From assembly GCA_043228905.1 (NCBI GenBank), contig JBHGNT010000009.1:496001-560000 (forward strand): a stretch of 64,000 nt of DNA, in the 5' to 3' direction. Source of the DNA: Azolla caroliniana. Taxonomy: Eukaryota; Plantae; Polypodiophyta. Positions 2,439 to 45,579 of the stretch are shown piece after piece (positions within the stretch are counted from its first letter, which is position 1; each line of letters starts with the position of its first letter). The position numbers and the translations under genes were made by a program. The notes beneath the pieces were generated by a model. The model had not been told where the DNA came from, did no database searches, and was given only the letters and a program-made list of their open reading frames with translations.

Positions 2439-3081
2439 GCTCTACATTTGTACATAAATCATTAATGTCACCTTTAGTGATTCCTTGAAGAAGAAAATAG
2501 AACACATGATAGATTTAGTGCCCATAACAAAACCTATAGATCAATGCACCTATGGATATATGAGCTTTAAAAGGATGAAATATCATGATTATTTTTAGGA
2601 TAAGGTTTTGTTCATCTAAATAAGTCACTTTGGCCTAACCAATATTAGAAGTGGAGAAAATAGATGGGATAATGTGTTTATACTTGAGTATCGTAGCTCC
2701 GATAATTTGAAAAGCTCCCCAAATTTTGCCAACTATGTCGAAAGCATGTAAAGCAAGCAATGAATTAGTCTTCGGCATTTTGTGGTGATGTGTCCACTAC
2801 ATCAAGAACCAATGGCAATGCATATCATGAAGGGTATATGACATTGTGTGAAGTCGCCTTTCTTCTTCCCTAGTGCCTTTGAACTTAACAACAATTAATT
2901 TGTTCCTAATTAGTTCTTTCTTTAAACAATTTGATTAATAGATTTTATTATTGTTTAAGATCAAATACAACCTATGGGAAATGATACCTTTTCAAGTATA
3001 TGATGTGTTATTCATTAGTGACTCTGAATGTTCATTAGTGAATTTTAGCGATGAATGTTGCAATTAAGAGTGCATATAATG

Positions 3082-3724
3082 CAGCAACAATCAAGGGGAA
3101 GAAGAGGAAGCATTTCATCTTTTTATTGAATTGCAGCATGAACATGTAATGCCAGACGTGGTCACTTTCATATTCTTCGAGAAGGAGAATACAAAACCTC
3201 ATGTAGTGAACTTTCTAGGTGATTTAACTGTGTGTATAAATCTCACTTCATTAGATGGATGTTTCAGCTTTTCGGATGATTTGGAAACACTTGAAAAGGT
3301 TGTTAATCTTCTTGCATACATAAGTCATAAGGATCTATTTGCAGATTTCTAAAGGAAGAAGCTTGATCGGAGGCTTCTATTTGACAAGAGTGCAAATGAT
3401 GATCATGAAGCAAAGTTGAAGTAACAGTGTGGAGATCAATTTACCTCCAAAACAACTATTGGAAAAGAAGCATTCAGGATGCCATGCATTCAGGATTAGA
3501 CCAAGCATTTGTACGGAATGTGTTTGAATTGCAGAATAAATATCTGCAATAGGTGAGTAATGCTTTGTACATCATTCCCTCTTTCACAAGGCTCTAAAGG
3601 AAGCTTTTGAAGTTTTCTGTAACAAAGGTGTTGATGGAAGCAGCAGCACTAACCTATTAGTTGTATTTTGTAGCAGATACGCTTTTTAAAACTAATGGAA
3701 GGATATCTTCTTTGGGGAAAAAAG
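3082..3724 (+). pseudogene. Chimeric processed insert: PPR fragments plus three permuted cullin-1 fragments, flanked by a 15-bp direct repeat
   Basis: Translates QGEEEEAFHLFIELQHEHVMPDVVTFI and KPHVVNFLGDLTVC (PPR-like), then [65 protein letters not shown] and [41 protein letters not shown] (CUL1-like). AGAGTGCATATAATG at 3067-3081 and 3725-3739. Confidence 0.85.
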
Positions 3725-4404
3725 AGAGTGCATATAATGTCTATAATAGAAGTATGTGTAGAGATAGGTTTGGAATAGCAATGCAAAGAAGTAAATCAAT
3801 AACAACCCTTTACAAGCCCATGATCTAAGCAAGAAATGACCTAATCTCAAAAAGTAAAGAATATGTGGAGTTTATGTATTGAATAAAGAAACTTCATATT
3901 ATAACATTATAGGGCATTTTCAAACTCTTTCTAGTTGGACTTGAAGTTCAACCCCATGGGGAAGCAATGGTGTGACGTGGGTGTCAAAGAGATATTTCTT
4001 GAGAACACAATGTTCATTCAATTCTTCTTCTTTGCATACCTTCTCGAATGCATCATGAGCCTTCTTCTCCAACTGAAGCTATGAGTAGCACTTTCATTCC
4101 CAAGGTGTATGAAACTTTCTACCTTTTCAATTATTACACACAATGTATGGTTTATACTTATTTTGTGTCTTAACAAACATAACGTTCATTTTAAAACTCA
4201 CGATGCATGCAAAAGTTTTGCAAGACACTTGTAAGCTTTTGTGCATCCTATAAACTATTTATTAAAATCACCACATCATTTGTACATAACAAAAGCATGA
4301 CTATTGCTTTCCAAATTGTAGCTTCTCCATGTCAATGACCTCCTCCAATTCCTTAATGCATTAACTATTGTTGGTTATTGGTTGGGCTTTATTTTTTTCC
4401 TCTA

Positions 4405-4908
4405 GAGACATACATAGTTAGCTATGACGGACCAATTGATAATATATGAGGGATTACAAGAGAAAGAAAACACTAAGAAAGTTTATCAACGGTAACATGA
4501 GGTTTGACAAGAGTGGGACGAACTAGTTGACAATTCATGAGGGGATATTGGAGAAAAAAACATTGAGATTATTTTGACACCTCTTGGAGTTTCCCTAGAT
4601 TGGACGAGTCATGTGATCCATGTAGTTATTTACCAAAATCCATGGTGTTAGTGAATCCCTAGATACATAGTTAGCTATGACGGACCAATTGATAATATAT
4701 GAGGGATTACGAGAGAAAGAAAACACAAAGAAAGTTTATCAATCGTAACATGATGTATGAAAAGGGTGGGAAGAACAAGTTGACAATTCATGAGGGGATA
4801 TTGGAGAAAAAAGCATTGAGATTATTTTGACACCTCTTGGAGTTTCCCTAGATTGGATGAGTCATGTGATCCATGTAGTTATTTACCAAAATCCAAGGTG
4901 TTAGTAAA
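4405..4908. repeat. Tandem duplication, unit ~255 bp, 2 copies
   Basis: ATACATAGTTAGCTATGACGGACCAATTGATAATATATGAGGGATTAC...CCAAAATCCA.GGTGTTAGT starts near 4410 and again near 4663. Confidence 0.9.
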
Positions 4909-5527
4909 TATAAACATATAACAAAAAATGTAGTAGCTCCAATACTATTTGACATTATTTCCAAATAATGATGTTAGCAATATGAAACAACTTTGAAAAT
5001 ACATGGTAAAGATACCATGTTGGTCCTATTATTCTTTGGGCAATGGGGCTTCTAAAATAACATTGTTCGTCCTCATGGGCAATATTTTAGATCCCGAGAC
5101 ATTTTGCTTTCTCATCCAATCTTACATGAAGTTGTGAGATTTGTCTTTTATTTCTTTCAACCAACATCAACATTCAAATAATATTGCAAAACATATACGT
5201 TATAAGGTTGATTTCAAATCCACACAACTCTCCCATGAAGTGTATTGTGTTGGCACATTCAATTATTTAGCTTCATAACAACTAACTCTCAAATTTCTAT
5301 CTCTGATAATGACAAGTCACCCATATCAATCCCCACCATTGGGCCCATGAAGTTATTTGCTTATATGATCCAGTGCTACTTGTTTTATTGATATGCTCAA
5401 GTCCTTCAACACATTCAAGATCAATACATGACGTACTACAACATGATTCTGAAGTCCATTGAACAATGAATATTTGTGTATGTGATCCAAGACACATTGC
5501 AAATTTGACATATGTCAAACTAGTTCT

Positions 5528-8500
5528 CCAAAATGAAGCTGCTTTCCCATTAGTTAGGAAGGATTATTACAAAGAGACTGTACAAGGAGGCTTATACACA
5601 AATCAGGGAATCTCCCTCCGATCAAGCTCAAGAAAATGAGACTACTTACATAACCTTTCAGACTGACTACTTAATGTAAGTAGATACCTATAGCTAAAAG
5701 CAGTGCCCTTCAGTGTTGGCTAGTACGAGCCAACTCTTGGGGCCTACAATAAAGGGAGGGTGGCAAGTGAGTAGGAAACAACCAACGTGGGGGTTAGGAT
5801 GGTAGTTCCACCTCGGGCCACTTCCTCCTTGCGTCACCCTAGGCGTGTTTTGCCATTCCTGCCAAAAGCGCAAACGAGCAGTGACCACGTCGTTGGAATG
5901 GTTGCAAACCTCATCCAATTGCCCTCGTAGGAAGCTAATAAGCGCAAACCATATGTCCAGGATCACTTCCTTCGGGGGCCGTACCAAATCTTGGAAGACC
6001 TTTAGGCAACGCGTTTTCCATACATACCACAGGGTGAAGCCTGCAATCAACATCCAATTTTCCAAGAACCTAGGGGATGCGGATTGCAAGCCTCTCTCAA
6101 AACGGATCTTGACAATTTTGCCTCTCATGCATACATAGCACCAATTATCCGCATTGAAGGCGTCCATCCACCTATCAACAGAGTGTGATCAATCCATGCC
6201 ACAACACTCGACGATGATGTTCCTTCCACTTCACATGCCGCAAGGAGGCGAGTCACTCTATCCCATACCTTTTGAGCTTGAGGGCAATCCCACAAACAAT
6301 GTCTCAGAGTCTGAATAGGTGAAGAGAAAAGTGGGCAACCTAACAGAACGCCATGTTTACCTAGCCATTCGCCAACAGGAACCACATTATGACTAATCTG
6401 CCACCAAAAGAGCTTGATCTTTTCAGGCATGTGGAGATGCCAGAGACCCTTCCAAAAGGTAATGAGCACCTCATCAGGGATGCCCAATGTTTGCCAACCA
6501 TTGCGTAGGGGGGGCATCTAGCTACAATTGTAAAGTCTGGCCCAATTTAGTGTTGTATTCGAAGAAATGGTGGAGTTTGCCGTCATGTTTCCACCTAAAA
6601 TCCCCTGGGTCCCATTCTAGTTCAACAAGGGGACAACAACCGTATACCCATAACTTCCAATGGGGTTCCACCTTAGCAACATCTGGGTTTGTCTTCCAAA
6701 TGTTATCAACCTGCGCCACCACTCGGATTGGGTGCCAAGAGCCCCTACTCTGACTCTCCCCCAAATTTGTATCTCTTCCCGATCCGCTTGCGCCCTTCAA
6801 CAACTTAACCATTCCAGCCTCATAAAAGAGACCGAACCATGCATCTTCTCTCACCTCCCCCATCGGAACCCTATCAATTGCCTCAGCTCTCCGCATTTTC
6901 ATAGCTCCCTTAAGGGGAGGGAATTGCTCGTGGGCTCCTCTTGAATAAACCATGCGTCTCCAATCATCTATAGAATGGAGCCTTGTCTATGCCATCTTTC
7001 CCCATGCTAGGCCCTTATGTTGCCCTAACATCATGTCGTCACTTGTTCGCACCTGAGGGTTCCAAAATAATGGATGTCTAGTCCACTCGATTAGTGTCTC
7101 CGGGGTGTGCTTGACCAAATGATGTCGTACGTGACACCATGCCTGCAAGATGAAGTTCGTGACCCTGTCCTCCAGTTGACAAGCCATCTTGGGTGGGACT
7201 CTGCTCGTGCAACACCAATTCAATGAGTCGAGCCAAGGCCTACCATACTTGGGAGTCCCCACTTGCAACCTATTGCGAAGTAGTACCTTCCAACACCCCT
7301 TACCTATCGTGACCTACTCACACCTATGCATATGCGGAAAAACACGGAGCTGTTGATAGGGTGATGACTTGCATTCACCCCAAGGTAACCCAAGAGATGG
7401 AAGTTGTGCTCAATAGCCCCATTTCTCGATTAGAACTCTCAGAGGTGCTCAGGGAATTGTGGAGAGGAGCATGCTCTGACCCCGATAGTCTCTCAAGAGA
7501 CTTTTTTGAGATTCATTGGGAAAGTGTTATCCCGTCATTGGAAGCCGGGGTTCATGAGATTTGAACCTCAGGACTGATGCCGACTGTTCTGACTGAGGGG
7601 ATGATCTATCTCATCCCCAAAGCGGCAGAGTGAAGCATAGAGTTGTGCCGATGGCGTCCAATCACAATCCTTAACACGATTTACAAGCTACTCGCAAAAG
7701 TCCTCGCTCGGCAGATAGCAAGCTTCTTATTGGACATCATACATGAGAATCAAATAGGGTTTATCAAGAGTAGGTGTATTTTTTATAATGTGCTGCTTCT
7801 CTAGGAAGTTATGGCATTGGCAAATCGCTCCATATCGAGCTCGGCTATTCTGATGTTAGATTTTGAGAAGGCCTACGACAAGGTGTTATGGCCCTTTTTG
7901 GAAAATTTGATGAGAGCTATGAGCCGACCCCAACAATGGAGGAATTGCACTTCTGCACTCTATCGGGCTACCAGTACCGTGCCGATAGTTGGTGCTAGGG
8001 GCCCCGCCTTCCAACTACAACGCTTAGTGAGACAAGGTTGACCCCTAGGCCCATATCTCTATCTATTTGTAACCGGGGCATTCTCTGCCTACTTACTAGC
8101 ACCAAGCAACGGACTGAGGGGATTGCCAATCCCCAATGAGAGTGAAGATCTTCTGTTATCTGAATATGCCGACAATATGGTCCTTTTCTTGCAAGGCGAT
8201 GATGAGAATTTGCAACAGGCTAAACATCTTGTTGATTACTTTTGTCATGCCGCTGGTGCCAAGGTCAATCGGGATAAAACCCAAGGCCTCTTGTTCAACG
8301 AACAAGAGAAACCAATGTGGCAACCCCATGCCGATTTTACATGGGTCCCTGATGGGACGACATTCAAGTACCTAGGATTTACGATGGGGAGTGCAATTGT
8401 CCCATGTGCAAGCCAAAATAAGGAGGAACCTGAACCAATGGAGTAGATCTAAATTATCCTTCGATGGTAGGGTCCTTATTGCGAACCAAGTGATGCTCAC

Positions 8501-8731
8501 CACCATGTGGCACTCAATCTCATGCTGGATTATGGACCCTGCAGGTTTGCACACGATTAAGGCTGCCATCAAGGGGTTTATATGGTCAGGTAAGGACAAC
8601 CCGATGGCTTCCGCCAGAGTGTCATGGCGTTGGTTAACGCAACTACGGGCAAAAGGGGGGCTTGGCCTCGTAGACCCCTTAATGCAGAACCGAGCATTGC
8701 TAGCCAAAATGGTGGTTCGATGCCTCCTACC
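5528..8731 (-). mobile_element. Degenerate 5'-truncated, 5'-inverted LINE copy of the family at 39437-45772
   Basis: 5528-7304 is the reverse complement of the intact element from 43984 to its 3' end. 7304-8731 is the + strand match to 42534-43982. TSD ATGTCAAACTA(G/T)TTCT at 5512-5527 and 8732-8747. Many stops and frameshifts (ORF pieces 5694-6167, 6125-6517, 6987-7268, 7361-7564, 7811-8041, 8123-8446, 8391-8789). Confidence 0.95.
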
Positions 8732-11700
8732 ATGTCAAACTATTTCTATTATTATCTCTACATGTGTAGTCATGGTTTTCATTCCATAATGCTACATAAT
8801 TTTTAAGGACCCTTCTAATACGATTGCACACGTAAAAATTACTTTTCAAATTTATACGACTTCTTTTCATCCATATAAGTCCGACCATTATATGTGTATA
8901 TGCCCATATCCTTAATATATGTGGCTTGAAATATTTTCATGTGCCAAATCAAGAAATGTTGAGCTTGAGACATACAAAGACTAAGAGAGACAGAGGAAGA
9001 TTGGCTTGAGTTTGTGTTGTCTATGAGATTGACATATTGGTTGCCTATTAGGTCAATTATGTAAACATGATGATATATTGAGAGAAGTTTTGGCTCATGA
9101 CACTCAATTAACGCTTGGACGATGGGTTTGATGGTTGATTTTGATGTGAAAATATTTCTTGAAAAGTTGTTTTGCAACATGGAAACTGTGTAGAAATTGT
9201 GTCATTGTAATTTGTTACCAAATGTAGCATCTTGAATAAAAATTGAAAAGTGGTTTCACAACATTAACGTTGATATGAGGTTTTATGATTTTTCCCAAAC
9301 ACATTATCAATTCAAATAATGTGTATTATTTACATGGGATGGATATGCATTTGAGTCACTCACTGTAATTGTATGAGCGGCTTTTGTTACAATTTGAAAG
9401 TTGATAGCCATTTGTACATTGTGGTGCTTGTCCTTGAATCATGATGTATGTTAACATCATTGTGTTTTTATGTAACTTTTCAACTTGGATATTGATAGCC
9501 AATACATTGGATTGTGATTTGTCTCTTTCAAGGCTCGAATTTCAACAAAGTCTTGGTGCTCTATTTCACTCTGCATGGCTAGTAAATATGATGAGTTACC
9601 CTTTGGATCCCTCTTAACCAAATTGTATTATAATATATTGTTGTTCTGGAGTTTAGACTACAATTTTCCATCAAACTTTTGACTTGCTAACACGTATCTT
9701 CTCGACATATGCACCAATGTGATTGTGTTTTGAAGATTGAAAGGGATGGGTTGCATAAGCTTATTGTCTACTTACATATGCTTACATGCTTAGATATATG
9801 TGTTGTTACAATGATTTTTTGTTTCCTTTCACACTCTTCACTAATATTGTGGGCAAATGTCTTAACGACAATAGGTTTCGTGATAATGTTTCCTTATTCT
9901 AATTTTCATACAAGAAGATGACATTTTTAGTAGCCAAATGTTTAAACATAATCTTATAATGTACTTTTCCAACACGAACCTAATTTCCCTCAATTTTTGA
10001 ATGCCCCAAATTCCTCTACACGTGACTTTTCCCCCTTGAAAAGACCTTAGCATGTGGTTCTCCCTCCCTCCTTTAAATCCCTTTGCATGTGCCATGGAAT
10101 TTAAATGCAACTAGGGGAAAACAAGCCTCTAATCTAGAAAAGGTCACACATTTTCTCCAGTATACAACATCAAATATCAGAAAATGTGATGTTTTCCCCA
10201 TTCATCAAATTTGCAAACATCAAATATTGATGAAACATTTCAATATAAACCTAGTATGTTTTTTAATAATGAGTTTTAGACAAAAGAACATAATCTCTTC
10301 ACGAATCACTATCCCTTATCTTGATATCATTATGAGTGTCTTTGAAAATATGCAATGAATAGTATTTTTTTTCCAAAAAACTCTACTTCGCATTAGTTAG
10401 CAAGCAATGAATAGTATTAATCGATGACAACATTGTATATTCATTTTTTATGACATCAAATAGATATTAATATGAAAAAAATTGTGTTTATGCTATAGAC
10501 GTATTAAAATAATTGCTTCAAAAAATGTGTTAATAGAACGTTTTATCACTATAAAACTTAGCTTGATTTTATGTATCATGCAAATGTACCAACTTGAAGG
10601 AAGCCTTAACCACCACAAGTGCCACCATCAAGTTGAAGGTTTCATATGAACATTGACACATCCAACTTTTGAATCATCAATTGTTCTTCTTTAACTTAAC
10701 ATCTTTTATTTAATATATTCTAGAAGGCCTAAGCATATGAAAAAAAGCCCATGACCAACACATCACAACGTGTACATCCATGACCCATCCAAATATTCAG
10801 ATGACTCAACCTTTATGGATATACATAATCATTGAAATTTCATATTTAACAAGCTAATGGAAATATATTAGCAAACCCACCAATGCTCAGGGTTCAATCG
10901 TGCAAATTATGTAACATAACTCTTCAATTAAACGATTGACATTTGAAATGTAACAAATATCATTTGATTCACTAGTGTCATGTAGTATTAGAACTCATCT
11001 AATTTATAGTAGTACTTACTATTATATGTCTGGCAAGTGTGTTGCCATAAATATATGGTCAATCACTCTATTTATGGCACTAATCATTACATAGCACAAG
11101 TTGAATTGAAATAGTATCCATATGTTTTCTTTTTATATGTAATTAAGCCATATTAATCATTGGTGTTAATGTAACTAATTAGGTATTAATCATTAAAATA
11201 CCTACAATTAATATCATCTTCCCTAATTGCTTATCTTCCTAAAGATTGATCGATTTTTTGCGTAAACTTAATTTTTTTCTTTAATATTAAAATATGGTGT
11301 ATGTCTAGGTGTTTTGTTTGTTCCCATTTGAAAAACCCTCTAAAACCCGTGGACTACCCTACCCTAACCAACTAGAGTTGGATGAATAGAAATAAAGCTC
11401 AAAGAGCTCTCATTGCATTTGTGTAAATAAGACAAATGCGTTAAAATCAATACATGCATATAGATTGATTTGGAGCTTTAGGTCCACCACCAAATGTCTT
11501 GATTTTATTACCTAATAACTTTCAAAATTTTAAGTTGGACCTTCTCCTCAATGCAACAATGTTCTTTCTTGTAAAATGCACAACAAAAACATGAAGTTGA
11601 ACTTTGCATTTGGTCATTGAACTCAACCTTTTATTTTGTTAAGAAGAAGTGATAGAACATGCATTCCAACATTGCACTCGATCATCAAATGCAAGAAAAA

Positions 11701-18423: not shown

Positions 18424-21400
18424 GCCATAACACAGCATATATATAAAACTTCGCCACCGCATCGTTGCTGGAAATAGAATATTTCTTTTGAGGACAAAAA
18501 GAGCCAATTTCTCCACAGGACATTACCTTCAAATCTTACATATATGATAGCATAATGATTATATATACAATCCTTTGTATGTAGTTGATACAATGCTATT
18601 TCTATCTGTGCGTATCATTAATAAATGATTCTTAGTATGGAAATAATTCTGAGTCAACTGTTTGACTATTTTCTCAGGACGGACAATGCTATAAAGAACC
18701 ACTGGAACAGCTCTATCAAGAAAAAGCTTGATTCTTTCTTTATTGCAAGTGCCTCCAGGCAATCGTTAGAACCCAACATTTCAGAGTGTATGATGAAGGG
18801 TGCTGATAATGGGTCAATAATGGAGATGCTCACATCAGTTAGCCCTGAAATAGAACTGGCCAAACGACAAACCAATTCTCCTTGTACTCAGTTAGAAAGC
18901 TCCTTGCATGGCTATAAGTATCCCAAAAGTGAACGAATGGAGGAATTTAAAATGTGTGATGAGAGCATGCCCATCAAAAGTGATCGCAGACACTTTCGTC
19001 CTCAGCGTAGAGGATCTGAAATGCAGCTCACTGCTCAATATGAAGAGATCCATGGGCAGCCTTGCCAGCTTGCACAAGTACATCAATGCTCACAGACACC
19101 GAGCCTGGAGAAATGCCAACAGAATGATGGCCGCTACAGCCTTGGAGCATCATGCCCTCAGGTACAGCAGTCACAAGAAGTGTGCATTAACCCAATGGAG
19201 ATAGATGTTTCTGCACAAGAAGCTGTAGGAGTGGCAAATGGTTTTTCTCCTTTGGATTCTTCTGTGCACCATGGATCTCCAACCAATCCATCCATCTTAG
19301 CTGTCCAGGCATACTCCCCAGTTAATTCCTCTTCCCATTTGTCTAGTTCTTCTCAAAGTCCTCTGAAGCCTGAGAGAAAGCAAAATCTGTTGATCAAGAT
19401 GAGTGCAGACTGCCGCAGAACAAATCTTCCTGCTTATGCAGCTGATTGCCTTCAGCTGTCTGACATCCCTATCCTTGAAGACATTGATCAGAAAAAACAT
19501 TTTGGCAAAGAAGTGCTAGACTTGAGAGACACCATGGTTGGGCTTCCTGGTTGCTATGGAGAAGCTATTCTTGAGCAAGAACTAGAAGGCATTGAAATGG
19601 TTCAATGGCAGGATGAACATGAAGAACCAAGTTCTGAGACACCCTGTATAGAGGCAGAGTCTCTCTTCTATGAACCTCCTAAGTTCACAAACCTGGAAAT
19701 GCCATTCACCAACTATGATGTGATGACTTCAAATTATGTCCAGCAAGCCTATAGTCCCCTTGGTGTGCGTGAAATGTTCTTTTCCACGGTGAGTTGCTCC
19801 ACCCCATCAAATTATCCGTGGGTGTCATCGCCATTGTCAGAAGACAGCCCACAAGCTGTCCTGAGAATTGCAGCACGAAGCTTTGGTGGCACACCTTCAA
19901 TACTGAGGAAGCGCCAGCGAGAGCTGCTCACTCCGGTCCATGAGGCTAGATCCAATGAGAGAGACAATGCTCCTGTTGCCACCACATCTGCAGTAACTCC
20001 CCAAAATGCTTTACAATGTTGCCATGAGCAAATTGAACTGTCTGATTCCAAGCCAGCAGGAGAAAGGTCTATGCATGTTTCACCACCGTATTGCTTGAAA
20101 TATAAAGGTCCACTTCATTCGAGGTCGAACATGAAGAGAGGATCTATTCGAGTAAAAGCTGAGAGTTCGCTCCACGAACCAGAGTGCATGGAAGGCTCAC
20201 CTAGATATGTAGGTCAAAGCTTTAAAATTATTTCGCATGGAACCAACCAAGGCATCAGAAACCACTATTTATTAGGAAAAGAAGTTAAGGTATTTTTCAA
20301 CTGTAATCTGATGCACACAGATATATTCAGAGAAATACATAATGTATATATAAATAAATGTTGAGAGAGATTACTTTTGTTTTTCTAATTTGCAGTTTGA
20401 TGGACATCTGGAATCAAATATGTTATCATATACACCAACTGGCAAGATTTCTTCACGGTCTCCACTACTAAAATCTTGTGAGAAGAAGCTTGGATTGAAA
20501 GTGCTGATGCCTAAATCGGGAAACATAGTTCCGGTTTCAGGTTCAAGTCAGGATTTGATAAATTCCATGGCAGAATGGGATAGTCTCAACATGTATGCAT
20601 TCTAGATTTTGCCAACTTATTCTTATGTTTTCTCGTACTCATTCAGGAACTGTTTAATAGAATTGTGAAGTGTGGATATATATATATATATATACAGATA
20701 TGCTCATTTCTATTTACTTTTACTTATCAACTGAGATTGTTTGATGTGAATTGGGTCTCTTGGTATGCGAATATTAAGAAATATTAAGACCATTCTCATG
20801 CTGTGCATCATGAATGGCATCATTAGGCCAACTCTTCTGTACATCTCTGTAATATCAAGGTCCATTAACTTAACTTTTTTGATTGCATTCCAGGAATTAG
20901 AGCGTCTTACTTCTTAGTTTACATTCTAGTAACTTTTTATTGGTTCTTCCTGCCTTAGTGTGTTGAACTGGATGTCTGCATTAGAATGGAACCTACAGTA
21001 CTAAAGCTTTTACATCTCTCCAGGTCATTATGTTCACCTTTGGTCGGCTGGAAATCGCCAGTCTGTTCTGGGCCCCTCTCTGCCCAGGAAGCAAGAACAT
21101 ATTCAGTGCTAGAGGTAAAAAAATAAAGTACCTTCCTCTTTCTGTTTACTTCTGGTATGAGGCAATATTTTTATACTCAATCACTACTGTAAAATGATTG
21201 TGGCCTTGTCTAGTACGCATTAAAATTGATTGTTCTTATTTGGGCAGCAGGATACCTCGGTGTTGTATCGTGAAGATTATGGGGCAGATGCTCTGAGTCT
21301 GATGGAACAACTAAGCCAGCATACCGCCTCTGCCTTTATGGAGGCTGAGCAAATCTTGTCGTCATGTGATGGTAAAGCCAAAGAATTGGTACAGTCTCTG

Positions 21401-27981: not shown

Positions 27982-28419
27982 CTTGGACAAAATCACGTTG
28001 TTAGAAGCTTCTAACCAAATCAACTGTGCTTGCAGCACCGGCTATATATATGATGGCCGGAAGTTTCTCGAGTGCGAGATTTGTATCTGCAAACTAAAGA
28101 CATGCATGTATATGTAGATGTATAAAGGTATATCTACTGCTTGGACAAAATCACGTTGTTAGAAGCTTCTAACCAAATCAACTGTGCTTGCAGCACCGGC
28201 TATATATATGATGGCCAGAAGTTTCTCGAGTGCGAGATTTGTATCTGCAAACTAAAGACATGCAGGACAAAATCACGTTGTTAGAAGCTTCTAACCAAAT
28301 CAACTGTGCTTGCAGCACCGGCTATATATATGATGGCCAGAAGTTTCTCGAGTGCGAGATTTGTATCTGCAAACTAAAGACATGCATGTATATGTAGATG
28401 TATAAAGGTATATCTACTG
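27982..28419. repeat. Near-identical tandem triplication, unit ~158 bp, middle copy truncated
   Basis: GGACAAAATCACGTTGTTAGAAGCTTCTAACCAAATC...AAACTAAAGACATGCA at ~27985, ~28143 and 28265. Confidence 0.95.
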
Positions 28420-28910
28420 GAAGTGATGCTGATATGTTATGTTTTAGAAATCACAAATTTTGTGATCTTCTAACAAATTCATAAGAGTAATGACAAAATT
28501 TCAGAATGATCTATCTAAACTTCTTTGTATATACAACGTTGCGTTCTTGAACTGAAGATTTCCCGATAAAACATACATGTTCACACATAACATAGAATAT
28601 GAGGATTCTGGGATAAAACATGCTCATGCAAAGATCTCCCCACTTCTAGTGTTTTAAACAATGTGCGGCATTGCAATGATTAAAAGGCTCTGTGCATTGT
28701 AGTGCTGGGGCATGGAAGGGTTGATTAGTTAATGTTTGTAACATTGCAATGTTGAAAGTCTCTGTGCATTATATCGTTGAAGTTTTGAAGGCTAGGTGAT
28801 AGATTGTACAGACCTTCTAATTCATATGAGTTGAGAATATGAAAAGATAATGTGTATATGATTGGTTAATGATAATTGTAAAGATTATATAGTATTTCTC
28901 ATTGTTTAAA

Positions 28911-30333
28911 GGGAAAAGTACTAGGATACCCTTGGAAGTTCGTCTATTTACCAGAATGCTCTTGGAAGTTTCAAATTTACCAAACTACTTATGTCCAAAA
29001 AAACCTCCTTCCATAAGTTATAAAATTTTACAAATGAGATGATTATGTACAAATCCTTATAGGGATGCGATAGTTCTATCTTATGTGGATGCCCATTGAC
29101 CCAAGAAAGGGAGAGGACGACCATTGTTGGATGAAGGCTATTCGTTGTCTTTCAACTCCATCATAGTTGCCCTTGAGGCCATCATATTGGCTCTTTAGAG
29201 TGGCTACAATTTCATTCCATATCTCTTGTAGTAACATTGTTGGATGCACAGTTTGGTTGGAGAAGACCTGTCTACATCGTTGTTTCCATAGAATCTAAAG
29301 AGTTATTAGGCTGACCAATTCCAACACAATTTGAGATTTGTCATTAAGAGGAGTTGCGTGGACATTGCTGATGGTGGAGAAAAAAACCTCTTGTGATTTT
29401 ATCACCAAAGTCATCCCCTCCTAATGCTCGTATACGGGAGAGCTAAGGTTCCCACGTTGGACACTCTACACAATTAGGAGAGCTAAGGTTCCCACATTGC
29501 CATGCTCCCACCGATAGTGACTTATGTATTAATAGCCATTGGAACGTGGTAATTGGCCTCACGTATTGTTGTTTCTAGATTTTCTGTCAAAACTTGGTGA
29601 TAATTGTGTGAGGAACTTGATATGTGTGCCAAAGCTTTGCAAGAGTTGGCTCTCGGGCAGTTTGAGTAGCTAGGATGTGGCAACCCAATCTAGTTGTAAA
29701 TTGGAAGAAAGGGATAGGTTTGTTTCCTTGCTCCTCTGCTTAAGGACCACGCCATGTCCATTGCAAACGGTCCCAACTGACCTTACGTAGCCATGTGTTT
29801 TCATGAGTACATATGTGCCAATCGGGTTGTACTTTGATCGGATCAGGATCTACAATCCATTTAGGACCAGTATACGCGAGTACTCGAATTGCGTTATTCT
29901 GTGTTGGTGTCTCAATGTCTCGGAATTCAGAGGCTTCGATCCAGTCTAGTGATCCCCTACCTCTCGGGATCAAAGATCCCTCCTCCTCGTAGAGGGGATC
30001 AATAAGACCCAATCCCCCTCTTGACTTAGGTGTTGTGAGTATAGGTCATGCCACCTTGGCACGAGTTACATGATATTCCTTACCAGACCAAATGTAGTTG
30101 CGTACTAGTCGTTGAATCTGATGTATATTGTCCTTGGAGATTGTCTAACATGATAGATTGTACCATGCTACTTTATAAAGTAATTATACACTCAAATCTT
30201 TGGTAAATAGGGCTAGGTTGGGTCCATTTCTTCCATCTTTGGTAAATAGGGCTTGTAGGTTTGAGTGTATAATTACTTCTAGGGGCATTCTGGTAAATAG
30301 ACGAACTTCTAGGGGTATCCTAATACTTTTCCC
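28911..30333. mobile_element. Non-autonomous Mutator-like element (Pack-MULE-like) carrying a LINE ORF2 fragment
   Basis: About 60-bp TIRs GGGAAAAGTA(C/T)TAGGATACCC(T/C)T(G/A)GAAGTTCGTCTATTTACCAGAATGC... and a perfect 9-bp TSD TTGTTTAAA at 28902-28910 and 30334-30342. Confidence 0.9.
29040..30165 (-). pseudogene. Deleted C-terminal ORF2 fragment of a second, diverged LINE family inside the MULE
   Basis: Minus-strand peptides IQRLVRNYIWSGKE..RAKVA..TPKSRGGLGLIDP, TFQWLLIHKSLSVGAW and ILWKQRCRQVFSNQTVHPTMLLQEIWNEIVATLKSQ align by eye with the ORF2 at 41266-45579. Confidence 0.85.
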
Positions 30334-30927
30334 TTGTTTAAAAGATACATACTATTTGCCATTTTAAACATGTGCCAATATTATAACCCAACATTTCATT
30401 TTCAAGTGTTTTAGAACCATACCCTCACCAAGTGAGCCGTTGGGAAGTTTATTATCTATGGTCAACTTCCTTCGAGTAGGTTTCCCCAACTAAATGGGAT
30501 GATATTGTAACTTGTGGTATTGGACCTTCTGGATAGATTACAATCCGTTAGTGCTTTTGCTTCTAATGCTGGGAATTTCCTAACTGAGTGCCTTTAGTGA
30601 AAATTCTGTCTAAAAAGGTGCTTTATTTTAGTGGCAAAATCCTTATGGAATTTTTACCAATGACTAACTTCTTGAGAGTATGTTCACCAAACTTTCATGT
30701 GGGTTCTTTCAACACACACCTTCAATCTCCAACTTGGTGTCAAATCTTTGGCAATCTTATACTATAGTAGCTTTAGAGTTTAGACAATCTCTATTTGCAC
30801 ATACTCGTTACTTATGTGATTTCCATAATGTTTTCTTTCATTTTTTATGCTCGCGTTCTTGATTGCGTGGTGCTTATCTTTCTTTAATTGTTCCATGCTC
30901 TTCTTTGTTATCCGACTTAGTTGCCAA

Positions 30928-35802: not shown

Positions 35803-36331
35803 GGATCGAAAATTTATTGAAATGTTGAATATATGGTAATCGATCGATCTGGGCACAAAATAGTCTACATGAATTGTAGAAAGTGTTTATGGAATTGAAA
35901 GGGTTTTTATTTTTAGACTATATGTTTGAGGCATCATTCAATTCTAATATCACAGAACTAGTGGGGTCTCTCCCACTTTATTGCACCTTCAATTCCTGTA
36001 CTAGTCATGGTTTTGATTGTGTGTGGGTTAATGGAAATATGTTCACTCTTGACACTTCTATTCGATTGGTGTCTGATCGAAAATTTATTGAAATGTTGAA
36101 TATATGGTAATCGATCGATCTGGCCACAAAATAGGCTACATGAATTGTAGAAAGGGTTTATAAAGGGTTTTTATTTTTAGACTATATGTTTGAGGCATCA
36201 TTCAATTCTAATATCACAGAACTAGTGGGGTCTCTCCCACTTTATTGCACCTTCAATTCCTATACTAGTCATGGTTTTGATTGTGTGGGTTAATGGAAAT
36301 ATGTTCACTCTTGACACTTCTATTCGATTGG
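35803..36331. repeat. Tandem duplication, unit ~270 bp, 2 copies
   Basis: GATCGAAAATTTATTGAAATGTTGAATATATGG...GACACTTCTATTCGATTGG at ~35803 and ~36076. Confidence 0.92.
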
Positions 36332-39300: not shown

Positions 39301-39799
39301 GGGTAGTAATTACTAATAAAATTGTTCCAAGTTCAAGGGAGTTTCAACAAGAGTTTTCTTATAAAATTTCTAGTCAAGAGTCAAGACATAAATGGCATGC
39401 ATGCATGCTGCTACTTCATAAGACTATATAATTTCCTTCTCTTTTAATAGAGATCGATGGCGCGCAGGCATGGCGTGAAGGAGTGGCGTGAAGGAGCAGG
39501 AGCGGGTGCACGCTGAGGAACGCACGCGCTACCCAACAGAGCCAGAGGCGCCAACTGCTGTCCAAGCCGTCACACTGGAGAACTGCAGGTAATAAGCAGC
39601 AGAGCGTTGGCGGGAGCAAACGCAGCAGAGCGCGGAGTGGGAGCAGCAGGAAAAGGCGTGCAGGAGCAGGAGTAGGTGCACACTGAGGAACACGCGCGCT
39701 GTCCAACAGAGTAAGAGGAGGAGCACAACGCCAATTGCTGTCCAGGGGGAAGGGAAGAACAACACATACAACCTAGGCTCGCAAGACACATAACTCGCT

Positions 39800-41269
39800 A
39801 TGATGGGAGGAATCAAGCTTCCACCAGCGTCCAATTTGCTCGATGAAGAAGGTGGATCAGATCTCGCCATTACCCTGTCCCCCGAGGCTAACCGTGTCTT
39901 AGCGGAAGAAATCGAACGCCTACGGCGTACCTCCTTCGTATGTAGGTTTCTGGCAGGTAGACCAAGTCGGGGCATGGTTCGGGACATGTTTCAGGTGGCT
40001 GTGTTGGAGAACATGCCGGTAATCAAGAGTGTCAGGGGTTTAGGGAAAAACTTCTTCCACATTGAATTAGGTAATGACTCGCTGGCGCAGCCATTGGTCG
40101 AGCTCAAGGTACTCGAACTGAAGTACGGCAAGGTGTTGCTCCAACCATGGTCACCAGGGTTCAATCCGATCGAAGAGTTACGGAAACTCAACAACCCTAG
40201 GGTGATCACCGCAACATTTCCTGGCCTCCCTCCACATTTGTACCATCTGCTCCCTCTTTTTGGCGAACAAGTAGGAATGATATGCCCTCAAAAAGCGTCA
40301 ATGGCAGACACAGTCGCAGAGGTGCCCAAGTTGCGTATCTTGGTGCTTTCCCTCCATGGACTTCCATCAAGGATTAGACTCTACTCTGAGGAGTTAGGCC
40401 TCACAGTGGTAAAAGTGGTTTTTGAGGGACTCCCGGGGCAGTGTTTCATTTGCAAACAGACAGGACACCTAGCTAAGGAGTGTCCTCGTAAGATTGGAAA
40501 GGGAAGCTCGGGACCACGACCCTCGGGCAAAGTCGGGACATCCAAGGGTGAAGAAGCTCCTTGGATATCCGTTAAGAAGAAGGGGAAACTTGGAGGCCTA
40601 GGTGCCTCCTCTCCCGCCCTCTTTCATGACCACCCCCTTGAAAGAAGTCCTGCCACCTTGTCACCAGCAAGCGTGGACGAGCAACCCTTGAAACGAGTAA
40701 AGATCCTCTCCAGGAGTGCCAAGGCACCCGACCTACAGGTGAGAGCTACCAACAGATTTACACTTCTTCAAGGGTTAGGGGATGGCGACCCAGCAGCGCT
40801 AGCAGCAATGCTGTCCCCGTGCGACTCCTCACGCCTTCCCCTGCGGGAGCCCGAACTCGTGTTCTCCACCCCGATGGAGATGCAACCCCAACTTGTACCG
40901 TCCACCCCGGAAGAGAAGCTGGCACAGCCCCCCCTCCCGGTGGAGCGGGAATGTGGTAGTGGCCTCAGATTAGTGAAATCGTGGATCCGGACGGGCAAGC
41001 TCAAGGACAAAGAAAAGGGTAAGATAGGAAGACCAACACCTGGTTTGGCGACGACTCTGTTAGATAGAGGGGTGCAAGTTGTGCCACCGCTTCGGAGCAC
41101 AAATGTATCGCGGGATCTATTTGAAGCGGGTCGAGAACGATCGGCTGAGAATCTTGTAGGGGATTTGCAGCCTGCAGTGGAGACCATACCCCCCGAAACA
41201 GGTGTTAGTTTGCCCCATGACATGGAGATCGGCCCGAACATGGGCGCCAACGTCACCGTTTTCGGATGA
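39800..41269 (+). CDS. LINE ORF1 protein (DUF4283/RRM-like N-terminus, CCHC zinc knuckle)
   Basis: 489 aa. CFICKQTGHLAKEC knuckle, LQPWSPGFNP and FPGLPPHLY motifs typical of plant L1 ORF1. Confidence 0.92.
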   Translation: MMGGIKLPPASNLLDEEGGSDLAITLSPEANRVLAEEIERLRRTSFVCRFLAGRPSRGMVRDMFQVAVLENMPVIKSVRGLGKNFFHIELGNDSLAQPLVELKVLELKYGKVLLQPWSPGFNPIEELRKLNNPRVITATFPGLPPHLYHLLPLFGEQVGMICPQKASMADTVAEVPKLRILVLSLHGLPSRIRLYSEELGLTVVKVVFEGLPGQCFICKQTGHLAKECPRKIGKGSSGPRPSGKVGTSKGEEAPWISVKKKGKLGGLGASSPALFHDHPLERSPATLSPASVDEQPLKRVKILSRSAKAPDLQVRATNRFTLLQGLGDGDPAALAAMLSPCDSSRLPLREPELVFSTPMEMQPQLVPSTPEEKLAQPPLPVERECGSGLRLVKSWIRTGKLKDKEKGKIGRPTPGLATTLLDRGVQVVPPLRSTNVSRDLFEAGRERSAENLVGDLQPAVETIPPETGVSLPHDMEIGPNMGANVTVFG

Positions 41270-44200
41270 GGATCCTAACGTGGAATGTACAGGGCCTTGG
41301 TGGAGGCCGACAACACCAAGAGTGTAGAAGACTTCAGGAGGAGTTGAATCCCCTTAATATAGGGGGCCATATTGACATATTGCTTTTGCAGGAACACCAC
41401 CTCTCGCAAGAGCGAACTCAGAGCTTAGTAAACCCCTTGTCAGGTGGGTGGACCACATGGTGGTCGGCTGCGCAGGGTGACCTCCACCGAAGAGGAGGGG
41501 TCTGCATCTCGATCAGCGATAAGGCCCGATACGAAGTAACATCATCTGGCACGCTGGTGGAGGGTCGGGCCTTATACGTGCTTCTGAAATGGAATCGCCT
41601 ACAGATTGGGGTGCTAAACATTTATGCCCCTAACTCAGCCCCCGAGAGAGCAATCTTTTGGAGGATGCTCGCGACAACATTACCTAATGTCGAGGCTTGG
41701 GTAATGGCAGGTGATTTCAACATGACTGAACACATGGGAGATAGGAAAGGAGGGACCCAGAGGCCTATTTATGGTGCGGAGCTGGATTCATGGGCTTTCC
41801 TAATTGGCAAAATCGGGGTGAAGGATACATGGGGCTCTTCCCTTAGGCGAAGCTCACATTCGCTGCACTTTTCTAGAGCCGCCGGGAATGCTAGGGGCGG
41901 TAGTCTTGCACGGCTAGACCGCATATACATCAGCTCATCCCTCGAAGAGCTCGGGGGCTCCTTTGCTATCTTGGCAGGCCTTACCTTTTCAGATCATCAG
42001 CCGGTGAGACTAGACCTTAACCCACCCAACGATAGCAAGGGCAGTCTCAATGTAAAGATCCCCATAAAGATCATGAAGAGTGAAGAGGTGAAGGCCGGTT
42101 TACAGAGTATATGGCAGGACACCATGGGCAGTAAATCAGCCAGCGAAGATCTGTTGAAAAAATTGGCCCGCTCGTCCTCCTTTTTACAACAAGAGACCAA
42201 GCGCGCCCTCCAACAGGTTAGAGCCATTGAAACAAAATTAAGGAAGGCCGTTGCGGCAGCGCAACGGCTGTTACAGGTAGACCCTAGTTGCAAATGGTCT
42301 AGAGCTAAACTAGAGGAAGCAAAGATGAAGGTACATGAAAGGACTTTGGAGAAGAACCGAATGTTGTTTCGAAGAAACGCAGCATGGTGGGCTAGAAAAG
42401 ACGACAAGGTCAACCGACATTTCTTTCACTACAAGGCACCCAAGGGTGGTGGTGGACGTATACACGGGCTGCGAAAACCAGACGGCTCAATAACGGAGGA
42501 CAAGACTGAGGTTCTGGAAATGGCAACACAATACTATCGTGACCTCCTCGCACCTACGCATGTGCGGCAAAACTCGGAGCTGGCTGATCGAGTGATGTCT
42601 TGCATTCACCCCAAGGTAACCCAAGAGATGGAAGTTGTGCTCGATAGTCCCATCTCTCGTTTAGAGCTCTCGGAGGCACTTAGGGGATTGCGAAGGGGTG
42701 CATGCCCCGGTCCCGATGGTCTCTCACGAGATTTCTTCGAGATTCATTGGGAATGTGTTCTCCCGTCCTTGGAAGCCGGGTTCCAAGAGATTTGGTCCTC
42801 AGGAAAGATGCCGATTGGTCTGGCTGAGGGGATGATATATCTCATCCCCAAATCCCAAGAGGGAAGCCTAGAGTTGCGCCAATGGCGTCCAATCACGATC
42901 CTTAACACGGCATACAAGATACTTGCTAAAGTCCTTGCTCAGCGATTAGCAAGCTTCTTACCGGACATCATACACGACAATCAAACTGGGTTTGTCAAGA
43001 ACAGGTGTATCTTTGATAATGTGTTGCTTCTTTGGGAAGCTATGGCATTGGCCGGTCGCTCCGTATCGAGCTCGGCTATTCTGATGCTAGACTTTGAGAA
43101 GGCCTACGATAGGGTGTTATGGCCCTTCTTGGAAAATGTGATGAGAGCTTTGGGCCTACCTCAAAAATGGAGGAATTGCACTTCTGCACTCTATCGGACA
43201 GCTACGAGTAGCGTGCTGATGGCTGGATCTAGGGGACCCGCCTTCCAACTACAACGCTCAGTGAGGCAAGGCTGTCCCCTAGCCCCATATCTCTATCTCT
43301 TTATAACCGAGGCTTTCTCCGCCTACTTACAAGCACCAACTAGCGGGTTGCGGGGATTGCCCATCCCCAATGCGACTGAAGATTTGCTGTTATCTGAATA
43401 TGCCGACGATACGGTTCTTTTCTTGCAAGGTGATGAGGAGAATTTACAGCGGGCTGAACATCTTGTCGAGGACTTTTGTCAGGCGGCTGGTGCCAAGATC
43501 AATTGGAATAAAACCCAAGGTCTATGGTTCAGCGAACAGGAGACACCAAGATGGCAACCCCATGCCGATTTTACGTGGGTCCCTAGTGGGACGACTTTCA
43601 AGTACCTTGGATTTACGATGGGGAGGTCAATCCCCAAGGGAGCTCAATTGGCCCACGTACAAGCCAAAATAAGTAAGAAGCTGAACCAGTGGAGTAGATC
43701 AAAATTGTCCTTCGCTGGTAGGGTCCTTGTGGCGAACCAAGTGCTGCTCGCTACCATGTGGCACTCAGTCTCATGCTGGATTATGGACCCTGCAGGTTTG
43801 CACGCGATTAAGGCTGCCATTAGGGGGTTTATATGGTCAGGTAAGGACAACCCACGGGCTGCCGCCAGAGTCTCATGGTGTTGGTTAACGCAACCGCGGG
43901 CCAAAGGGGGGCTTGGCCTCATAGACCCCTTAATGCAGAGTCGTGCATTGCTGGCTAAAATGGTGGTTCGCTGCCTCCTGCCCGGTAAGGGGTGTTGGAA
44001 GGTACTTCTTCGCAACAGGCTGCAAGTAGGGACTCCCAAGTATGGTAGGCCTTGGCCCGACTCCTTGAATTGGTGCTGCACGAGTGGAGTCCCACCCAGG
44101 CTGGCTTGCCATCCGGAGGATAGGGTCACGAACTCCATCTTGCGGGCATGGTGCCATATACGACAACATTTGGTCAAGCACACCCCGGAAACATTGACCG

Positions 44201-45579
44201 AATGGACTAGACAGCCACTATTCTGGAATCCTCATGTGCGAACGAATGACAACGCGATGCTAGGGCAACTTAAGGGCCTAGCATGGGGAAAGTTGGCACA
44301 AACAGGCCTCCTATCTATAGACGATTGGAGACGCATGGCTGATTCAGGAAGAGCCCAAGAGGTCCTTTTCCCTCCCCTCAAGGGAGCTACGAAAATGCGG
44401 AGACTGATAGCTGAGGCAGTTGACAGGGTTCCGATGGGGGTGGCGAGAGAACATGCATGGTTCGGTCTCTTTGACGAGGCTGGAATGGTCAAGGCGCTAA
44501 AGGGCATGAGCGGATCGGGGAGTGATACAGTTTTTGGGGACAGCCAGAGCAGCGGCTCTTGGCACCCAATCCGAGTGGTGGCACAGATTGATAACATCTG
44601 GAAGACAGACCCGGATGTTGCTAAGGTGGAACCCCATTGGAGGTTAAGGGTATACGGTTGCCGTCCCCTTGTCGATCTGGATTGGGACCCCGGGGATTTC
44701 AGATGGAAACATGACGATAGACTCCACCACTTCTTCGATTACACCACTAAATTGGGTCGGACTTTGCAACTGCAGCGAGGCGGCCCCCTTCGCAACGGCT
44801 GGCGAACATTGGGCATCCCCGATGAGGCGCTCATTGCCTTTTGGAAGGGTCTTTGGCGTCTCCACATGCCTGAAAAGATCAAGCTCTTTTGGTGGCAGAT
44901 CGGTCATAATGTGGTGCCCGTTGGCGAATGGTTAGATAAACGGGGCGGCCCGTTAGGCTGCCCACTGTGCTCTCTACCTAATGAGTCTCTGAGACATTGT
45001 TTGTGGGATTGCCCTCAAGCTCAAAAGGTATGGGATAGAGTGACTCGCCTCCTTGTGGCATGCGACGTTGAAGGAACAGCCTTGTGGAGCGCTGCGGCAT
45101 GGATTGATCACTCGGTCGAAGGGTGGACGGACGCCGTCAATGCGGATAGTTGGTGCTATGTATGCACGAGAGGCAAAATCGTCAAGATCCGTTTTGAAAG
45201 AGGCTTGCAGCCCGCATCCCCTAGGTTTCCGGAAATCTGGATGTTGATCGCAGGTTTCACCTTGTGGTATATATGGAAAGCGCGCTGCCTCAAGGTCTTC
45301 CAAGGTACAGTACGCCCCCCGGAGGAAGTGATCATGGACATATGGTTCGCGCTTATCAGCTGCCTACGAGGGCAACTAGAAGAGATCTGCAACCACTCCA
45401 ACGACGTGACCACTGCCCGTTTGCGCTTTTGGCAGAAATGGCAGAGCACACCTATGGTGATGCAAGGCGGGAGTGGCCCGAGGTGGAACTACCAGCCCCC
45501 ACGTTGGTTGTTTCCTATTCACCTGCCACCCTCTTTTCGGTGTAGGCCCCAAGAGCCGACTCGTACGAGGCCACATTGA
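41266..45579 (+). CDS. LINE ORF2 protein (APE endonuclease, reverse transcriptase, zf-RVT)
   Basis: 1437 aa. ILTWNVQG, LLQEHH, NIYAPN, AGDFN, RLDRIY, SDHQP (endonuclease). WRPITILN, LDFEKAYD, VRQGCPLAP, YADD, FKYLG (RT). CPLC..ESLRHCLWDC (zinc finger). Confidence 0.98.
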   Translation: MRILTWNVQGLGGGRQHQECRRLQEELNPLNIGGHIDILLLQEHHLSQERTQSLVNPLSGGWTTWWSAAQGDLHRRGGVCISISDKARYEVTSSGTLVEGRALYVLLKWNRLQIGVLNIYAPNSAPERAIFWRMLATTLPNVEAWVMAGDFNMTEHMGDRKGGTQRPIYGAELDSWAFLIGKIGVKDTWGSSLRRSSHSLHFSRAAGNARGGSLARLDRIYISSSLEELGGSFAILAGLTFSDHQPVRLDLNPPNDSKGSLNVKIPIKIMKSEEVKAGLQSIWQDTMGSKSASEDLLKKLARSSSFLQQETKRALQQVRAIETKLRKAVAAAQRLLQVDPSCKWSRAKLEEAKMKVHERTLEKNRMLFRRNAAWWARKDDKVNRHFFHYKAPKGGGGRIHGLRKPDGSITEDKTEVLEMATQYYRDLLAPTHVRQNSELADRVMSCIHPKVTQEMEVVLDSPISRLELSEALRGLRRGACPGPDGLSRDFFEIHWECVLPSLEAGFQEIWSSGKMPIGLAEGMIYLIPKSQEGSLELRQWRPITILNTAYKILAKVLAQRLASFLPDIIHDNQTGFVKNRCIFDNVLLLWEAMALAGRSVSSSAILMLDFEKAYDRVLWPFLENVMRALGLPQKWRNCTSALYRTATSSVLMAGSRGPAFQLQRSVRQGCPLAPYLYLFITEAFSAYLQAPTSGLRGLPIPNATEDLLLSEYADDTVLFLQGDEENLQRAEHLVEDFCQAAGAKINWNKTQGLWFSEQETPRWQPHADFTWVPSGTTFKYLGFTMGRSIPKGAQLAHVQAKISKKLNQWSRSKLSFAGRVLVANQVLLATMWHSVSCWIMDPAGLHAIKAAIRGFIWSGKDNPRAAARVSWCWLTQPRAKGGLGLIDPLMQSRALLAKMVVRCLLPGKGCWKVLLRNRLQVGTPKYGRPWPDSLNWCCTSGVPPRLACHPEDRVTNSILRAWCHIRQHLVKHTPETLTEWTRQPLFWNPHVRTNDNAMLGQLKGLAWGKLAQTGLLSIDDWRRMADSGRAQEVLFPPLKGATKMRRLIAEAVDRVPMGVAREHAWFGLFDEAGMVKALKGMSGSGSDTVFGDSQSSGSWHPIRVVAQIDNIWKTDPDVAKVEPHWRLRVYGCRPLVDLDWDPGDFRWKHDDRLHHFFDYTTKLGRTLQLQRGGPLRNGWRTLGIPDEALIAFWKGLWRLHMPEKIKLFWWQIGHNVVPVGEWLDKRGGPLGCPLCSLPNESLRHCLWDCPQAQKVWDRVTRLLVACDVEGTALWSAAAWIDHSVEGWTDAVNADSWCYVCTRGKIVKIRFERGLQPASPRFPEIWMLIAGFTLWYIWKARCLKVFQGTVRPPEEVIMDIWFALISCLRGQLEEICNHSNDVTTARLRFWQKWQSTPMVMQGGSGPRWNYQPPRWLFPIHLPPSFRCRPQEPTRTRPH

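Follow-up and report, generated by a model that had tools for sequence, protein, structure and literature searches.

Inversions of the 5′ segment make up 19 to 31% of recent human copies of L1, a long interspersed nuclear element (LINE) (PMC2912911 among the sources). They are attributed to twin priming: the T-rich target end primes on the tail of the element RNA, the other target end primes at an internal site of that RNA, and the resulting complementary DNAs (cDNAs) join by microcomplementarity (PMC2912911; 10.1101/2024.08.27.596794). Human inversions lie within target site duplications (TSDs) of 10 to 20 bp, with a peak near 15 bp (PMC4245944). Microhomology is found at both of their junctions, and about 70% have 2 to 5 nt of it at the 5′ one (PMC2912911). 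The inversion point has a deletion in 66% of cases and a duplication in 17%, which leaves about a sixth with neither; of the two arms, the one primed by poly(T) is the longer (10.1101/2024.08.27.596794). Here we describe a decayed LINE copy from the fern Azolla caroliniana that closely resembles these insertions. It lies in a 64,000-nucleotide stretch, referred to below as the window (contig JBHGNT010000009.1, positions 496,001 to 560,000 of the forward strand; assembly GCA_043228905.1), which also contains an intact relative. We conclude, with a probability of about 0.8, that the dead copy is the product of a single L1-type insertion event by twin priming.

The initial annotation of the window had described two opposed arms matching the intact LINE, and a self-BLAST of the window bore this out. 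Positions 5529-7304 matched 45753-43984 of the intact LINE on the opposite strand (84.9% identity over 1785 nt), and positions 7304-8731 matched 42534-43982 on the same strand (85.1% over 1449 nt). The description of one 16-bp TSD around the unit also held: the dead copy, 3,204 bp in all, has both arms within it. The two TSD copies are identical at 15 of 16 positions and had no further match with fewer than three mismatches across the window. The 3′ arm (1778 nt) is longer than the inverted arm (1428 nt), and there are stop codons and frameshifts in both. Coordinates are collected in Table 1.

Table 1. Features of the dead LINE copy and of its intact relative, in window positions (ref, position in the intact relative; ORF, open reading frame; RT, reverse transcriptase; UTR, untranslated region).
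Feature	Position	Strand	Remarks
TSD copy at element 3′ end, 16 bp	5512-5527		
TSD copy at element 5′ end, 16 bp	8732-8747		
Non-inverted 3′ arm (putative first cDNA)	5528-7305	-	ref 43983 to 3′ end; C-terminal ORF2 and 3′ UTR
Inverted 5′ arm (putative second cDNA)	7304-8731	+	ref 42534-43982; RT domain region; 5′-truncated
Inversion junction	7304-7305		2-nt microhomology CT, assignable to either arm
Putative first-strand endonuclease nick site TTCT/AT	8744-8749	+	
Intact relative (colinear control)	39420-45785	+	own TSD 39420-39436 / 45771-45785, 2-bp indel
A19 tail of intact relative	45754-45772		
ORF1 of intact relative, 489 aa	39800-41269	+	zf-CCHC clear; DUF4283 weak (E 0.012)
ORF2 of intact relative, 1437 aa	41266-45579	+	APE endonuclease, RT (YADD), zf-RVT; catalytic motifs present

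To read the junctions against the family, we fetched 48 related loci using the proteins of the intact copy and compared them with the dead copy by local scripts. Many of the related contigs are near-identical consensus assemblies, so the 29 loci in which the inversion point was located are not 29 independent copies, but they represent at least two subfamilies about 15% apart. All 29 have A at the base homologous to position 43983, where the intact copy in the window has a private synonymous C. Therefore, the non-inverted arm starts at 7305 (=43983), the inverted arm ends at 8731 (=43982), and nothing was lost or duplicated between them. The initial annotation was correct that the arms abut on the RNA, but the loss of about 1 nt that it reported disappears once the family base is used. 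The junction also shares 2 nt (CT), not the single C7304 that had been noted. A 2-nt match is, on its own, short enough to be due to chance. The chance of two independent ends abutting exactly is about 1.6e-4.

The inverted arm begins exactly at the edge of the TSD, a coincidence with a chance of about 6e-4 for a breakpoint made later. The first TSD base at that edge, A8732, is also RNA base 43983, which gives a perfect microhomology of 1 nt at the 5′ junction. Over the first six TSD bases from 8732, four match the RNA just past the breakpoint, the terminal base included. An equally good match to the target end over 6 nt occurs at only 2.7% of positions in the family RNA. The putative second primer has a penultimate mismatch, which human L1 RT tolerates with reduced efficiency (PMC3649969). 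At the opposite edge, the 3′ arm stops at the exact 3′ end of the family and is followed directly by the TSD, which opens with AGAA. The first nick would have been at TTCT/AT, the same motif as the target consensus TTCTA of Cuscuta L1-CS (PMC8091179). Two other insertions in the window imply TCTT/AT and TCTT/AA, the nick site of the intact relative being TCTT/AT. The TSD length, the 0-nt gap, and the longer 3′ arm of the dead copy all place it within the distributions for human twin priming.

We also compared the ages of the two arms by counting private substitutions in columns that are invariant among the relatives. There were 71 in 1141 columns (6.2%) of the inverted arm and 74 in 1390 (5.3%) of the 3′ arm (Fisher p=0.35). 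The two arms are therefore of similar age. Most of the decay is C>T and G>A change at CG sites (17% in both arms) and CHG sites, and the single mismatch between the TSD copies is consistent with the decay level of the arms. The Kimura two-parameter (K2P) distance between the dead and intact copies is 0.15-0.16, and decay of the dead copy itself accounts for about 0.06 of this. Its K2P distance to all relatives in the alignment is 0.13-0.16, and it has diverged by 10-15% from nearly all relatives seen. By these distances, the intact neighbor is a cousin rather than the source, and the dead copy comes from another subfamily.

All testable sequence hallmarks of a twin-primed L1, except for the poly(A) tract, are present: the single TSD falls in the range of 10 to 20 bp, the nick at the 3′ end is of the L1 type, the inverted arm starts exactly at the TSD edge, the arms abut on the RNA, both junctions show microhomology, and the arms are of equal age. 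These are the features that support the twin-priming interpretation put forward in the initial annotation. The architecture, the junction sequences, the nick motif, and the equal arm age can be read directly from the locus, and from them we infer an order of steps in which RT was primed twice on one RNA. The endonuclease would have nicked the plus strand of the window at TTCT/AT (8747/8748), with the second strand cut 16 bp away. The T-rich end would have primed right where the poly(A) tail begins, so that no A tract was added to the AGAA of the target, and synthesis of the first cDNA would have reached RNA base 43983. The second target 3′ end could then have paired loosely with the same RNA at 43983-43988 (the terminal base and three of the next five), and this second primer would have yielded a cDNA from 43982 to about 42534. 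The zero-gap abutment suggests that the first cDNA passed through the bases paired with this primer and stopped where the second cDNA had started. After removal of the RNA, the cDNA ends would have annealed through 2 nt, been filled in, and been ligated. The product would be a 5′-truncated and 5′-inverted copy in one TSD, dead on arrival and later decayed by CG/CHG methylation-type mutation.

Several observations weigh against this interpretation. The perfect microhomology at the 5′ junction is only 1 nt. The match of four in six bases at the target end is modest and depends on the length considered, such that 4-10% of positions do as well at 4, 7, or 10 nt. In a 200-nt fold of a relative, the putative second priming site is predicted to lie within a stem. 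The dead copy has no poly(A) tract of its own beyond the AGAA of the TSD, which can be read either as priming at the first As or as later loss. The junctions are read from the assembled contig; none of the fetched loci reaches into the flanks, and an empty site was not observed. Finally, none of 15 5′ junctions of relatives had an inverted arm in the 150 nt inspected upstream, in a biased sample of related short-read assemblies.

Some of these points would suit a different route within the same insertion event, which we consider improbable. With one priming only, a cDNA extended to 42534 might have folded back through the 2-nt match, been cut, and been rejoined to the second target end by microhomology-mediated repair, a form of double-strand-break end remodeling. 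It has been proposed that break ends induced by L1 can anneal to themselves and give rise to inversions while the TSD is kept (10.1101/2024.12.14.628481). The 2-nt match at the inversion junction serves this route as well as it serves twin priming, and the weak 5′ microhomology is in its favor. In the published cases, however, it is genomic DNA that is inverted, and a deletion or duplication remains. The cut would also have to fall at the exact fold-back point, with no nucleotide lost, at a place where the target end happens to match at four of six bases.

It is very unlikely that an ordinary 5′-truncated copy had its 5′ 1.4 kb inverted later by a genomic rearrangement. Such rearrangements are known to occur, and this one would be compatible with the equal decay of the arms. 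However, one breakpoint would have to coincide with the edge between TSD and element (the chance of about 6e-4 given above), and both would have to be free of loss. There is no inverted-repeat substrate longer than 2 nt at the breakpoints, and the TSD and flanks are intact. A local mis-orientation in the assembly is even less likely. The reliance of the junctions on assembled sequence leaves room for it, but the dead copy is effectively unique sequence, given its 10-15% divergence from nearly all relatives seen, and a misjoin is not expected to coincide, to the nucleotide, with both the TSD edge and the family base at 43983. Two independent head-to-head insertions, or the recopying of an already inverted master, are largely refuted. 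The locus has a single 3′ end and a single TSD, and the arms together make up one stretch of RNA exactly, a fit with a chance of about 1.6e-4. The copy of an inverted master would include flanking sequence or stop at some other point rather than end at the inversion point.

Twin priming therefore remains our explanation for this one copy. The initial annotation had gone further and claimed that the family twin-primes. One copy fits twin priming, but a habit of the family was not borne out by the 15 sampled 5′ junctions. Finding none inverted gives an upper 95% bound of 18%; the probability of that outcome is 0.001 at the rate of human truncated copies (37%), which makes that rate unlikely here, and 0.21 at a rate of 10%, which is compatible with the sample. 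Among human copies overall, 10-30% are inverted. Nor was there an opposite-strand family arm among the 48 fetched loci. Short-read assemblies probably drop inversion junctions that run from repeat to repeat, and some of the sampled 5′ junctions may be later breaks. A broader proposal is that twin priming is routine in several fern L1-group families, including those with a conserved 3′ hairpin, and is an intrinsic and ancient property of L1-type ORF2p, where the cut is staggered by about 15 bp and the second strand is cleaved early, independent of mammalian host factors. We hold this proposal only tentatively, at a little under even odds. If it is true, then models of second-strand cleavage could be tested in a fern genome, as a second natural census.

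Two other junctions were noted among the fetched sequences. At L048:2957, family sequence ends at ref 42537, 4 nt from the truncation point of the dead copy, and is followed by unrelated sequence with a Ty3 capsid gene. We took this to be a coincidence and rejected it as a related event. At L022:6613-7155, the end of a family copy meets the 3′ part of sister family L020, which lies tail to tail with it on the opposite strand; this may be a join from a collapsed assembly.

The family to which both copies belong has the features of the L1 clade. ORF2 has APE, RT, and a C-terminal zinc motif, a separate ORF1 has a zinc knuckle and DUF4283 as in plant L1, and the elements have a poly(A) end and a variable TSD of about 15 bp. 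The DUF4283 match exceeds the cut-off in ORF1 of sister family L020, and the 3′ ends of the intact copy and its relatives carry runs of A7 to A19. An RNase H domain was not detected in the LINE family of the window. The best match of ORF2 among solved structures is human L1 ORF2p (E 8e-68), with R2 proteins at 4e-23 or weaker. Close relatives were found only as unnamed proteins of metagenome assemblies (86-93% identity), followed by two sister families at 41-47% and then by angiosperm L1 proteins at about 25%. An RT tree placed the family and its sisters on one long branch apart from the angiosperm hits; this tree was built without a reference Tx1/L1 set, so it does not separate L1 proper from Tx1.

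A short hairpin was noted at 5548-5564 (minus strand), at approximately 45717-45733 (plus strand), and in L003, L013, and L017. It lies some 20 nt ahead of the poly(A) and is conserved in the family, and its loop motif is common to the family and a sister family that is only 44% identical in ORF2. This suggests that 3′-end recognition may be stringent in these fern LINEs. The 5′ UTR of the intact LINE (39484-39746) contains a repeated unit of 80-90 bp (39485-39564 and 39655-39744), which is also found in relatives and is reminiscent of monomer promoters.

Other elements in the window include a non-autonomous Mutator-like element at 28911-30333, with terminal inverted repeats (TIRs) of 61-81 bp and a 9-bp TSD (28902-28910 and 30334-30342). 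Inside it is a degraded piece of ORF2 from another LINE family (29061-30183, minus strand). The inverted repeat at 28.9 and 30.3 kb had been a candidate for a second inverted LINE, but it was rejected because it is the TIR pair of this element. A TSD-flanked retrocopy at 3067-3739 has a LINE-type 3′ end with 73% similarity over 74 nt to the 3′ end of sister family L017, followed by a short A run, and it may have been mobilized through a borrowed LINE tail. A tandem duplication of about 250 bp with 94% identity lies at 4410-4909, 600 bp from the inverted copy, and similar short tandem duplications are at 27982-28419 and 35804-36331. An ORF of 579 aa at 18625-20364 had no Pfam match. For a host PPR gene, most named protein matches came from ferns, lycophytes, mosses, and gymnosperms, and the named match of highest identity was from Adiantum (46%), in agreement with a fern host.

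A twin-primed copy in a fern would mean that the inversion outcome is not confined to mammals, and the intact relative in the window, with its complete ORFs, could be assayed. There is also a practical side: annotation would count an inverted plant LINE copy as two insertions, and GraffiTE applies its inversion filter under a mammal flag. No effect of the dead copy on the host is evident.

The initial annotation had called twin priming rarely documented outside mammals. This agrees with PMC4245944, where 5′ inversions were found only with human L1 in human cells, plus a single 5′-inverted insert of zebrafish Nimb-2_DR in chicken DT40 cells, although our coverage of the literature is incomplete. 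In that work, 5′ inversion depended on both the LINE and the host, because human L1 gives inversions in human cells and none in chicken cells. The result links inversion to when the second strand is cleaved and to how long the overhang is, steps of target-primed reverse transcription that are still poorly understood. We found no report of a 5′ inversion in plants, in a search that left most subscription papers out of reach and could not use the usual spelling with an apostrophe. Inversion is not mentioned in a paper on dicot L1-like retrocopies (PMC4838847), and 5′ inversion is not mentioned in a paper on Cuscuta L1-CS (PMC8091179) or in a review of plant LINEs (PMC3747384).

With these plant L1-clade LINEs (PMC8091179; PMC3747384), the fern family shares an ORF2 of the EN-RT-zf type, a poly(A) end, a TTCTA-like target, and a TSD of 13-16 bp, but it differs in its long branch in the RT tree, separate from the angiosperm hits, and in that no RNase H domain was detected in it. 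With the Nimb-2_DR insert, the dead copy shares a 5′ inversion made by a nonmammalian LINE and a fairly long TSD (the Nimb-2_DR peak is at about 12 bp). However, that insert belongs to another clade and was one event in cultured heterologous cells, not a natural genomic copy. The closest likeness is to human twin-primed L1, with which the dead copy shares an inverted 5′ segment and a non-inverted 3′ segment, 5′ truncation, a single TSD of about 15 bp, a T-rich nick, microhomology at the 5′ and inversion junctions, and a longer 3′ arm. It differs from human L1 in its host, a non-flowering land plant, in an ORF1 of the zf-CCHC/DUF4283 type, and in having no poly(A) tract in the dead copy. Mammalian L1 has relaxed 3′-end recognition, whereas the conserved 3′ hairpin of the fern family may indicate a stringent one. 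The structure and its mechanism are well known from mammalian L1, and what appears to be new here is a clean twin-primed insertion in a plant lineage.

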